Of a stretch of DNA of 64,000 nt, positions 17,201-35,200 are shown piece after piece. The DNA lies in assembly GCA_964035545.1 (NCBI GenBank), contig OZ037769.1:11934633-11998632 (forward strand), in the 5' to 3' direction. The position numbers and the translations under genes were made by a program. Position 1 is the first letter of the stretch. The number at the start of each line of letters is the position of its first letter. Below the pieces are notes generated by a model. That model was not told where the DNA came from and searched no databases. It saw only the letters and a list, made by a program, of their open reading frames with translations. This DNA comes from Bugula neritina. Taxonomy: Eukaryota; Animalia; Bryozoa.

Positions 17201-20200
17201 TATTTTAAGAGTATCTATAATACACATGTATCAATAATGTCTTAACTATGATTACAACAAAAGCATATAATTCTAAAATATTCCTAAAATTACATTTTTT
17301 TCTTCAACTTTTGCAGAAAAGAATATAGTGAAAGAGTTTGCTCATTTAAAGCAGTGCATCACACGGCTTTTACGACTGTCAGGGTCGATCCTCATTTTGC
17401 CATTTCGCGATATTAGCCGCAATAAACAATATATTTTCGTGCGATAACATCGACTGTCTAGGGCGCTACTGTTGACGAATCAGAACAAAGAGAGCACATG
17501 AGTGCTGTAAACATGTACGTGTTGTTATGGTTACTAATGATGATCTGCTACGTAATTTTTGTAGTAGACAACTCTCACAGAAATCATTAATTTGTCTTTT
17601 CCTTATTTAGCTAACAACTTTTGCCTAGAAAAGAGAGAAGGCAAGGTGGCTCAAGCGATGCTGTATTTTTTTAGAATGTTTTAGCTTAAATTCTGTTTGG
17701 TTTATCCTACTAGAATGTTACCTGCTGCAGCATCAACACTATCATTGCAAAACTATATCTACTTATAACAAAATCTTGATGCCCATAGCAAAATTATCTA
17801 CTTTATTGTGGCGGATGTGCAAGAGTTTGGAGTCATCTCATCAATTACACATAGCAACAGAAGAACACAATATAGAAATAACAGAAAGCCAAAGACGGTA
17901 TACCTTTATTTTTAACCAAGAAAGAATTTTGTTAAACATTATATTGTTAAGTTCACCATAAAAAAACTGATTTTACAAGTGGTTACATCTTTTCCGAAAA
18001 TAAAGGTGCCATGAAGCAGCCGAAAATGAAGTCGTCCGCTCACCAGACACCTAAAAAATAATTATGCAACATGATATTTTTAAAATTAAACACAGATATG
18101 CAACAGTCATCACCTACATAATTTTTTATAAATTTAACAAGCTTGTTTAGTGAAAGTGTATAATACAAACACTAATGTTGATAGCGAAAATGCCATGTTC
18201 ATGCAAGATAGTAAATCAATATAAATAAGAACTCATATCATATCTATGTTATATATGTATTCAATTCTGGTTTATGCTTTATGCCTTCAACTATGAGTGC
18301 ACAACCACTAATCCTATTTCTACCAACACCATCTCTACCGCTAACAGTACTAACGTCAGAACCAAAAACAACTTCACCACTACTACTAATAATTCTATTA
18401 TTTTATTATTATTACTTCTACTACTATACTACTGCTACTGCTACTACTACTACTACTAGTGCTACTGCTACTACTACTTCTACTACTGCTGCTGCTGCTA
18501 CTACTTCTACTACTGCTACTACTGCTGCTACTACTACTACTGCTACTACTACTACTGCTACTACTACTTTTACCACTACTAATATTGTTTCTACTACAAA
18601 TACTGTAAATCTTACCAGCAGCAAGTTATATTGGAAACTGTTTGCTCATATTTTTATCATTGTATTAGTGCAATAACAAAATGTTTATATTTTAATATAG
18701 TCAAACCTTTTAAAAAACTAGGCTGCTACTTATGAACTAAGAAGTTGTGCTACCCACCTTGATATGCACTCAGCTCCAACACCAAGCAGGTGGTTATGAT
18801 GCTTCTCCACAATAGCCAGGCTATCCAGCTGTCCGATTGTATGCATCTACGTAAAAATTATTGGCATATGGTGCAAGAAATGATTAAAAACCAGATAGGT
18901 GTGCTAGAATTTATACAGCATAATATAGAGTAAGGTAAAAGAGAACAGACCGTCAAGTGGTACAGCATAGAAACAATTACTAGCTATTATATGCTTTATA
19001 GAAGTTGGCAAATTGTAGCCCACTAGATATGAACTTTAGTTAGCATTTTATTTTGGCTTTCAGCAACTGCTTTAATCACTGATCTTGGTAAAACCAATAT
19101 GTTTACAAATTAACACCTCCACTAGATAGGTATACAGGTCAAAATATTCCAATTGGTGACATACTAAAAGAAAATGTATATTTATTCATTTTTAAAAGAT
19201 TGCTAATAATTTATAAAACAGCGTCGAAATCACTAAAGTAACAGCGCAAATAAGTTTATTAAACAGCATTATAGGATTGCCTATTACTAGTTTCATGATT
19301 TCTATTATTTTACTGGTTTCAAACATAATATAGGCTGAAAAAGCAATATTAGTTCTCTCACTTTTGCTAACTACATTGCTTGGAAGGCCATCATAATTAG
19401 ATTAGATCAAACAAATGTGTTGACAGGTAGACTGGAACAGGCCTAAAATTTGCAAGGTATAATTTAAATTTATCTGGCCTGAAATTGCTGAAACTGACAA
19501 TACAATAATATGAGAAACGAGCAGGGTTTTTTATTAAAGCTAGCAAAAATAATTCCTCTACATATAATTAACATACAGTCCATACATATAATATATTACT
19601 ATGTCCAGGCAGCAGTGCTTGTTCTAGCCAAAAGAAAACTGATTTAATGGCTGATTTTAATGGCCAACAAGAAATTTATGGCGCACAGTGGCATTGTCAT
19701 ATTTTTAATATTCAAAATTACAGTTCTAATCTATCAATCATTTTATCAATACTACTATACTATAATCTACTCCTGCTGCTGCTGCTGCTGGTTCTACCAC
19801 TGCTACCATACTGTTGAGTAATGCAAGCTAAGTAATTTAAATTACAATTAAAAAAATTATCGGACTTTCTTTTCTATTACCTGTCTAGTTTAGCATTTCT
19901 TTCATCATAGCTTGCCATATTAACTTGAAAATTCACAGGGTTTGAGTTAGACCTATGGAATATACTTACAAGTAGAATGAACCCACAGTTCTGCAATATA
20001 TCATAAAAACATTCAAAATAAAACTATAGGAAAACCAAGTAAATGCTTCTAAGTATTAGCGCAAGTAAAGATGCTATGCAATCTATCCAACATGCAGCCA
20101 AATGTCTCAAAATAGGCTTCAGAGTTATAAATATAAAATGTTTCCAAATCAAGGCTAGCAACACTTCTGTTGTTGTGATAGCAAATTTTGCTTAATAAAG

Positions 20201-32200: not shown

Positions 32201-35200
32201 ATGTGTAATAATAGTGATGGGTCAAATATGACTATAGTTGTAGAATTTCTTTCACTTTTTAAATAACACTCAACAGGTGGACAGTGTATATAGTACATAC
32301 ATATTAGTTAGATACTGAACACTGGGCTAAATATAGGGTTTAGTTATTAAGTAAATATTGATAGTTGGTGCAATAATGGAGAAATTAAGTTATGTACATG
32401 TTCTTGTGATTACATTTTTATTAACCCGCACCCCACGCTAAAATTTGTTATCCAGATGAAGAAGGTTAAGCTATCAAAGCTTTTAAATTACTGCACAGAA
32501 GTGTAAAAATAGCAGCCTATTTCTTCTTGTTATATAGTGAAATGACATTCATTATGTATATAGGCATATATATATATATTTTAATTCTGTTACATCATAT
32601 TTTAGCTTTAAAACAAGCATGTTATGTCCATTTGTTTATCACACCCCTGCAGTAAATATGTCAAAAATTCCTTACTTTTGCTACCTAAAATTTCTTTTAA
32701 AATATAAGCAGCTACATAGAGCATTTTTTCAAGTTAGAAAATATGTATATATATTTTTAACTACGTTTTAAAAGGAATACAAATATGTAAACCCCAAAGC
32801 AGTGATTGTCTTCTTTCAATGCCATATTTTTGATGACACCAAGAAAGAAGGTGATAATGCAACTCCTAAGAGCATGTGCACTATGTCGCTCCTCTCATGT
32901 CTGAGAGTATACCATTTGTATTAATGTATGAAGTCTTCAACATATATTTCAACTTATTTTTGCAAGTAACTCATGACAGTAAACTATATGCTTGCTTTTC
33001 TTCATGTGTGTGTGCATGTGTGAGTGTGTGTGTAAAAATGCAGCACTCATAATAGTTGCTATTTTATGAACAGCTTACTATAGCTACAGTTATATGTAAT
33101 TGCATGGGAATGTTGCAAGTGTTTGCTAAAAGATGGTATATATAAAACATGTCGACGAATTTGTTGTAGAAAAATTTAAATAATTACTTAGCATTTAGCA
33201 ATAAAATTGTTCATGTACAAATCAGAAACACCAAGTTGTATGCATATATTTCAAATAGTATGCATGAATTTGCAAAAAAAAACTAGAACTTATACTTTCA
33301 CTATGAGTATATGTTTTATATATGTGCTCATTTTGTATATACTGCACAATATGTTATTTACAATGTTAAACCAAAATAATCAGAACTCAATATAGTGTAA
33401 TACAGGCACATCTAAAATGTTAACAAATATAACATTAAAAACAAGAAACAAAATTGTTGGTATCTTTTACTTAATTTTTTACAAGCAAAAAATTATTCTT
33501 GCCGCAAACTAAATTTAAATGCTGAGGTTCGTAAAGTTATATGTTTGTTAAATTATTTTGCATTTGTTTATATTCTACAAATAATTTCTACATCTTTTAT
33601 ATAATTGCGATATTTCTTTTCGTCTACTACATGCAGCTCATTATATGCATATGTAGGCTATATACAATGCAGCATAAAATTTTATAATACTAAGCAAAAA
33701 ATGCTATGAAAATAAAAACATTTTACAAAATGATATTATATTATGGTAGCAATAAAGTTGTAATAGACTATTATTTAATGAGAAGACAATTATGTCTTTA
33801 TAATGAAGATTGATAAATTTATAATATGAGCTGAAATTGAGTGAGAAGACAATTATGCTTTCAAAATACTTACAAGACTAAATTCTTATCTAATAGCTAC
33901 AGTAATTAATATCCTTTGTTTAGAACAAAGTCTCAAAGGAGCGGATTTAAATAAAAATTCAGACCTGCATTTGTTAAAGCTTTTCAATCAAAATTATTAC
34001 ATTATATTATTCTTTCTCATAACTCCTAGCTTCTTAAACCTTTTGCATGAAAAAATTGATTTAGAATGCAAATTACTGCTAGAAATTGCCGTGTTTTAAT
34101 GTCAACCCTAACTGTATCCACCACTTGTTTTAGTTGTTACGATCGTTGCCTAACCAATGAAGTTGAACTGGTTGTACCTCCAGCCAATCAATTACTTATT
34201 TCAATTGCGCCTCATTAGGCTAGGATCGTTGACGAAATCTATATAATGTAATACAAATCCCATTACCACTGATTGACCCGAAGTTCTCTACGACTTCTAT
34301 AGTGGTATAGGATAATAGATATACTGATTTAAAGTGGGGACTCTTTGATGAGGATGTATCAATAACTGATCTAAAAACACCAGTCTTCTACCTTTTTGAT
34401 GGCTCCTACCAACCAACCAGGTTATAAGTACTTGTTTATGCTGATATATATTTTGATTATACACACTCTATTAACAAGCCTTTATCTGGTGGAAGAGCTG
34501 TATAGTATATGCGTACAATATATTACATAATATTTATAGCTGCAAGAGCATCATTGCTCCTGTACTACATTAGAATAAGTTCTTTGCCTGATCAAAAATC
34601 TTTGTATCAAGGCTTCTTACAAAAATTTTGACTTTAAAAACAGATTAGAGCATTTTTTTTTACAAAGAAATGTAACTTTCAAAAAGTTTATTTTTATTGG
34701 GTTGCTTCATTAATTTCTTACTGATTTATTAACTCCTAAATTTTATGCATGTGTTTCGAATATCAAAATTGAAACATATACACAAGTCCTGAATTGTTAT
34801 AGTGTATTGCTCTAAGCAAAAATAAATTTGACGCATTTTTATTTTGCATTGCATAACCACCATATTGGGCATTCTGATGTAGGTGTGACAACCAATTGAT
34901 TTTTGGAAAAACCATTAACACAGACCAGGAAACCCCATGCAATCTGTCAGCTACAAAAAGCAGGGAATACTGTCAGTTTCTGCCATTATATTCTCCCAGC
35001 AGTGCCTCACTTTTGTATGCTCATCATTTATCAACTGTAAGTTGCTGCCTGTAGTAATCTCTGTCAAAATTTGTTTGCTGTTTCTATATTTAAATCTCCT
35101 GGACTAACAAATGGGATCAACATGAATTTCTAGCAACTGTGCTGCTATATACACAGAGAGAAATATTAGTGCAGCGCTTGCACTAAAGTTGTTCAAAGAG

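Follow-up and report, generated by a model that had tools for sequence, protein, structure and literature searches.

We analyzed a 64,000-nucleotide stretch of the genome of the bryozoan Bugula neritina (contig OZ037769.1, positions 11,934,633 to 11,998,632), referred to here as the window; coordinates are window positions, and features with an orientation lie on the forward strand unless stated otherwise. Matches to PF08434 and to the VWA domain identified two tandem CLCA genes in the window, each with CLCA_N followed by VWA, and the second of them, CLCA-2, is split within an exon by a large DNA transposon. The octamer ATTTAAAG is present twice, at 17344 to 17351 and at 34327 to 34334, as the left and right copies of an 8-bp target-site duplication (TSD), the left copy being also the final 8 nucleotides (nt) of the 5′ half of the exon. 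The two copies bound a 16,975-bp non-autonomous element of the KDZ class (17352 to 34326) with CAGT...ACTG termini, the left terminus reading CAGTGCATC and the right terminus GATATACTG. A perfect 8-bp flanking repeat is expected by chance at about 4e-5 per copy. We conclude that a cut-and-paste KDZ-class transposon of CxC3 type recently inserted into the CLCA exon at a staggered cut of 8 bp.

An earlier, sequence-only reading of this DNA had proposed a large, fully delimited transposon with an 8-bp TSD, set precisely in a CLCA exon of an invertebrate, and our analysis agrees. That reading also described inverted ends. The termini are as it gave them, but the terminal inverted repeat (TIR) is perfect over only 4 bp (7 of 9 and 10 of 20 positions match over longer spans). 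A subterminal GGGTC(G/A)ATC pair, located at 17382 to 17390 and 34271 to 34279, was rejected as a second TIR because a 9-mer with at most one mismatch is shared between the 100-bp ends in 45% of shuffles.

The interrupted exon comprises a 5′ half of 35 nt (17317 to 17351, ending in KEFAHLK) and a 3′ half of 86 nt (34335 to 34420, beginning with WGLFDED). Rejoined, they make 121 nt, as had been noted from the letters alone; this is the length of the uninterrupted counterpart exon of the tandem paralog CLCA-1 (975 to 1095), which also encodes KEFAH, and the AG/GT splice borders and phases agree as well. Upstream exons of CLCA-2 with PF08434 matches lie at 15306 to 15422 and 16124 to 16295, and downstream exons encoding CLCA, VWA, and C-terminal regions span 34883 to 47854. 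With the element removed, a stop-free GT-AG chain of about 840 to 850 codons runs across the gene. Immediately upstream of the insertion, the CLCA-2 intron holds two old dispersed repeats (16630 to 16830 and 16929 to 17234).

Both flanks of the insertion are single-copy in the genome that we searched (216,009,554 bases in 321 pieces), which matches tzBugNeri2.1, an assembly of 216.00 Mb in 320 scaffolds plus the mitochondrion, with 9 chromosomes, built from PacBio reads with a contig N50 of 4.0 Mb and a quality value of 53.7 (PMC11480708). If a repeat had been wrongly joined into the gene during assembly, a possibility that the sequence-only reading had itself raised, the lack of any contig of run X1 across the left junction might be seen as a symptom, although short contigs are expected to end at repeats. 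We consider misassembly extremely improbable, given the exact 8-bp TSD at intact termini, the single-copy flanks, and the PacBio basis and quality of the matching assembly. Contig depth in X1 is about 125 on the flank and about 3000 to 3500 over most of the element, a difference that fits many copies and that we do not take as a copy number.

An empty site was sought in Logan contigs of runs X2 and X3, which come from other samples that are about 7% diverged and possibly represent cryptic species. Contigs from both runs leave the window sequence at 17345 and continue into the WGLFD codons, forming an uninterrupted exon, and the X2 contig also spans the unique intron end. The empty allele anticipated by the earlier reading was thus found in the form of an uninterrupted orthologous exon, but one in which 3 of the 8 TSD bases are different. 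The X2 and X3 samples also hold diverged relatives of the element's left end. A word share of 9% in other runs was considered as a sign of absence and rejected, since a divergence of about 7% predicts that share.

Each end of the element has 30 to 40 matches in the genome, and pairing them gives 30 elements between 16,975 and 32,468 bp long, which total about 0.58 Mb (0.27% of the genome). Among the 27 pairs for which both flanks were read, 22 carry a perfect 8-bp TSD, and all 22 TSDs are different; three of the remaining pairs have an imperfect or 7-bp TSD, and two have none. Multicopy ends that pair around differing TSDs are what the sequence-only reading had expected a genome search to reveal. 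Target bias is weak and palindromic (T-N8-A): T precedes the TSD in 16 of 22 cases (p=1.6e-4), and A follows in 12 of 22 (p=0.03). Nine copies are at least 99% identical to the window copy over its full length, and eight further copies of about 18 kb are 97 to 99% identical to it over most of that length, while about nine others share the left arm and have a different interior and a right end at 81%.

Some copies of the family are clustered (C9:3.058 and 3.094 Mb, C112:0.60-0.65 Mb, C2:30.20-30.28 Mb, C7:12.12-12.24 Mb, and C8:1.85-1.98 Mb), an arrangement that suggests local hopping; in one case two copies whose TSDs differ are separated by 36 kb, and in another two inverted copies by 17 kb. 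One 17-kb copy (L018, C2:30261544) sits within a GCCCT pentamer repeat.

Matches to PF18758 (KDZ) fall within five copies of 26 to 32 kb, the sequence of which was read over a 3.2-kb core and 1.8 kb at each end, with the remainder taken from match coordinates. In L008, one of these five copies, six GT-AG exons distributed over 1.7 kb make up 269 codons without a stop, and the exon preceding them has a CxC3 match (E=2.3e-5, 24.6 bits) just below the cut-off of 26.6 bits; long homologs of the intact core mostly exceed that cut-off. Residues D47, C126-R-H128, D162, H190, H194, E216, and E219 are near-invariant between the core and its homologs. The five large copies are 99.5 to 99.9% identical over the intact core, and the exon carrying the first conserved Asp was found at 100% in these five copies only. 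Membership in the KDZ class is safe, given a KDZ domain with the conserved D, D, and E, a CxCn cluster, and fixed ends combined with varying TSDs. When the genome was searched with PF18804, the known CxC3 exon went undetected, so negative family searches are uninformative here.

The label "Zisupton-type" in the sequence-only reading needs qualifying. Zisupton elements are characterized by 8-bp TSDs and a multi-exon transposase (PMC12730594, PMC9297572), and with the broad sense used by Repbase the element agrees in its 8-bp TSD (PMC12730594) and in the multi-exon transposase gene of its relatives; of the TIRs that also belong to that sense, it shows the 4 perfect bp described above. Placement in the strict Zisupton clade is unsupported: the canonical Zisupton architecture is CxC4 plus SWIM (PMC11343200), and neither was present in ten long homologs of the core, which have CxC3 instead.

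The window copy itself is non-autonomous and unable to make transposase, because exons are missing and those that remain have suffered a deletion, stops, a frameshift, and the loss of a splice donor. It retains only the later KDZ exons, from 25264 on; the CxC3 exon, the first-Asp exon, and the next exons are absent. In the exon at 25371 to 25496, about 53 bp that include the G-x5-CRH motif are gone and the frame is shifted. In the exon at 25674 to 25819, the second conserved Asp (D162) has become Asn, and there are three stops and a 1-bp deletion, with a conserved His and the donor lost. The exon at 26119 to 26236, which contains the conserved Glu region, is still open, with 69% amino acid identity to the intact copies; it is followed by what is left of the next transposase exon (roughly 26384 to 26466) and by a later exon-like block at 27795 to 27910 that is 76 to 78% identical to the 26-kb copies. 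No Pfam match was obtained from open reading frame (ORF) pieces of the window element, and the homology emerged solely by way of the intact copies and sequences related to them. When long CxC3-KDZ homologs were used in profile and phmmer scans, no further exons came to light in the window, and inspection by eye, with no profile run for them, revealed no remnants of SWIM, SAP, Ulp1, or chromodomain sequences there. The same dead core is nonetheless present at 99% identity or more in 17 copies and so was still amplified recently.

Comparison with the intact copies indicates that the element is a mosaic. In the left arm (17352 to 24931), three blocks are collinear with the five intact copies at 93 to 97%: 17352 to 20268 at about 97%, 22110 to 22880 at 93 to 94%, and 24056 to 24931 at 94%. 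The right arm (32730 to 34326) is 92 to 93% identical to the 26- to 32-kb copies, whereas the core between the arms reaches only 62 to 77%. A separate family of four or five loci aligns collinearly with the interior of the element at 74 to 85%; compared with the intact copies, it lies nearer in the core (81 to 85%) and farther away in the arm block next to it (77 to 82% versus 94% for the intact copies). Across the broken exon its length is also equal (204 bp versus 199 to 204 bp), which suggests that it shares the deletion of about 53 bp. The loci of this sister family (C3:16.20, C7:14.06, C8:2.23, C6:3.74, and C6:4.92 Mb) are apparently also dead and multicopy.

A plain internal deletion of a 26-kb autonomous element, with the core decaying as a pseudogene and no recombination, would account for the overall collinearity with the 26-kb copies, and deletions did occur. 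At a 4-bp microhomology junction (25221 to 25224), the 18-kb subfamily has an extra 1.17 kb, most likely reflecting a deletion in the 17-kb subfamily. However, neutral decay of a single lineage cannot yield noncoding arms at 92 to 97% alongside coding exons at 62 to 77%, and the core is nearer to the third family, which spans the broken exon at equal length. We therefore regard simple deletion as improbable and already largely refuted. Across the family, at least three different right halves follow the same left arm, and trees of the left and right ends conflict, for example, for the copy at C5:8.2 Mb. The simplest reading of these patterns is that the element is a recombinant produced by arm exchange between lineages. 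The giant element of the sequence-only reading is accordingly real and delimited, but it is a dead, non-autonomous mosaic.

Several smaller components lie within the element. An unstranded 1.8-kb segment (20269 to 22109) occurs in the 17- to 20-kb copies and is absent from the 26-kb copies; within it, a decayed dispersed repeat at about 20437 to 20950 is 67 to 74% identical to eight other loci and resembles, by eye, the 3′ end of an RTE-type long interspersed nuclear element, with no Pfam match. Also without assigned strand are a TAC/TGC microsatellite of differing length among copies (18413 to 18581), a nested piece resembling a miniature inverted-repeat transposable element with 165-nt inverted arms that are 92% complementary (28407 to 28910), and a short nested repeat, about 160 bp long and inverted at its ends (29897 to 30056), of which there are many dispersed copies at 91 to 95%.

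We propose that the transposase of the 26- to 32-kb copies would bind short asymmetric sequences at the ends of window-type elements, excise them, and insert them elsewhere with an 8-bp duplication. Active-type arms may have been joined to the long-dead interior by recombination, probably by template switching during repair of an excision gap or by ectopic exchange. The 26- to 32-kb copies are the likely mobilizers because no other intact related core was found between such ends. The first 110 bp of the window element are identical to those of three of the five intact copies. The terminal 68 bp (34259 to 34326) hardly vary among right-end types whose similarity elsewhere is only 78 to 81%, which points to a functional end, likely a candidate transposase-binding region.

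Mobilization by another transposase is a competing explanation that we judge unlikely. It could have been supplied by the other haplotype or by a second, unrelated KDZ family (L001-L005, at C4:11.72 Mb twice and at C5:10.99, C5:8.72, and C8:6.20 Mb), in which several copies carry a single open 451-amino-acid frame. That family has no BLASTN match to the window, while the 26- to 32-kb copies have the same first 110 bp as the window element and nearly all of its last 68 bp. Copies of the second family are near-identical, and L001 and L002 lie 6,767 bp apart in a tandem-like arrangement. In L004 (positions 2597 to 3490), a frameshifted KDZ copy of that family is followed by a 298-amino-acid frame that resembles, by eye, the gag of a long terminal repeat retrotransposon. 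Single KDZ exons, repeated or diverged, occur at C3:20.018-20.023, C6:2.457-2.459, and C4:12.45 Mb, among them four first-Asp-like exons within 4 kb and two Glu-region exons 1.7 kb apart.

For CLCA-2, the insertion most likely creates a null allele, as judged from predicted splicing and translation. Read-through from the 5′ half of the exon meets a stop after 31 element-encoded codons, skipping the interrupted exon shifts the frame, and the in-frame ways of splicing the element out use poor sites. An alternative is that the element is removed as a new 17-kb intron, leaving CLCA-2 functional; the rest of the gene is undecayed, and within 400 nt of the element's ends there are five GT-AG pairings that keep the frame and contain no stop. 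The donors are poor in every case, three of the five have an acceptor with 4 pyrimidines in 15 positions (real acceptors have 7 to 13), and each would add 6 to 37 residues inside the motif. Recent insertion accounts for the undecayed state of the gene, and functional splicing of this kind seems unlikely to us. PF08434 marks over a dozen CLCA loci in this genome, and these, or heterozygosity, may allow the insertion to be tolerated.

The sequence-only reading had placed the insertion in an active-site exon, a description that does not hold, because the motif was already degenerate. The CLCA consensus is HExxHxxxGxxDEY within a CLCA_N plus VWA architecture, and zincin motifs with His-to-Lys or His-to-Arg substitutions have been described (PMC3650047). 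Both paralogs in the window resemble those CLCA metalloproteases with substituted sites in having CLCA_N and VWA, and both depart from the consensus: KEFAH replaces HExxH at the interrupted motif, and KEFAH...DED replaces HExxH...DEY (989 to 1030 in CLCA-1; 17334 to 17351 and 34335 in CLCA-2). Since KEFAH occurs in both, the site was probably noncatalytic before the insertion, and both paralogs are probably noncatalytic regardless of it. The shared KEFAH...DED suggests that the animal may have a noncatalytic CLCA subclade. That the element landed at the "active site" itself is probably due to chance and of small consequence.

Taken together, we consider it highly probable that a recombinant element, mobilized in trans by the 26- to 32-kb copies, inserted recently with an 8-bp TSD and left a likely null CLCA allele. 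Several observations count against this interpretation. The target of the window copy, with C at −1 and T at +1, is off the family bias, and mobilization in trans was deduced rather than directly observed. The intact transposase gene is known, as sequence, from 3.2 kb. The empty site is the orthologous allele of another lineage and not the preinsertion allele of this animal, and the null effect on CLCA-2 is a prediction from the DNA.

We speculate, with confidence evenly balanced between acceptance and rejection, that very large non-autonomous KDZ elements keep their mobility for long periods by taking fresh arms from the lineage active at the time. On this view, the transposase in the interior of the element was broken before 15 to 20% divergence accumulated, and that interior now lies between arms that are 3 to 8% from active copies and has outnumbered those copies, 17 to 5. 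If this is true, recombination would offer a route to long survival for non-autonomous elements of 17 to 20 kb with almost no TIR.

The closest known systems include animal CxC3-KDZ proteins, listed as uncharacterized, from a sea anemone (Nematostella, XP_048586080), a sea star (Patiria, XP_038071093), a barnacle (Amphibalanus, XP_043242318), and fishes (among them Dissostichus, KAF3833318), which are 32 to 41% identical over the 269-amino-acid core and share the CxC3 plus KDZ architecture and the conserved D, D, E, CxH, and HxxxH. Members of the Zisupton superfamily (PMC12730594, PMC9297572, PMC4455052) are likewise large and multi-exon, with PF18758, 8-bp TSDs, and recent activity, and they occur in invertebrates too. 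The invertebrate setting stressed by the sequence-only reading is not new, because KDZ/Zisupton elements in invertebrates have already been described (PMC9297572). Unlike Zisupton, the family described here has a TIR perfect over only 4 bp and CxC3 relatives, and the window copy is a dead, 17-kb mosaic with intact relatives of 26 to 32 kb. In Cryptococcus, KDZ1-3 (Dileera clade, CxC1) and KDZx1 are known from full-length insertions into genes with 8-bp TSDs, and KDZx1 has no detectable TIR; in contrast to the window copy, these elements are 6.4 to 10.9 kb long, the TIRs of KDZ1 are 236 bp, and each element encodes its own KDZ protein (PMC11343200). Fungal Kyakuja elements also have CA..TG termini without real TIRs and differ in their 7-bp TSD and TET/JBP cargo (PMC12730594). 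Membership in Kyakuja was ruled out by the 8-bp TSD, as opposed to 7 bp (PMC12730594), and no TET gene was seen in the element.

These results supply exact ends, a TSD, a target bias, and a pairing of autonomous with non-autonomous elements for a widespread, poorly delimited animal CxC3-KDZ lineage. At 17 to 32 kb, the elements are well above the 6 to 11 kb of fungal KDZ elements (PMC11343200), and the 30 copies, lacking a long ORF, are easily missed. The family is sufficiently young to be disrupting genes, and within the Bugula species complex the CLCA insertion might be used to mark lineages. Its mosaic structure offers a testable case of the persistence of large dead elements.

Other features of the window were noted. 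In their last exons (46414 to 47313 versus 8564 to 9355), the CLCA paralogs are 85 to 88% identical as DNA, compared with 66 to 77% in earlier exons, a hint of gene conversion. Two coiled-coil-like ORFs of 183 and 206 amino acids lie on the minus strand at 53525 to 54076 and 56799 to 57419, with no significant Pfam match. A 22-bp minisatellite occupies 38453 to 38690, and a perfect AC run extends for 635 bp from 50675 to 51309. A dispersed repeat with inverted arms occurs at 12610 to 13043, 58112 to 58537, and 60132 to 60535.

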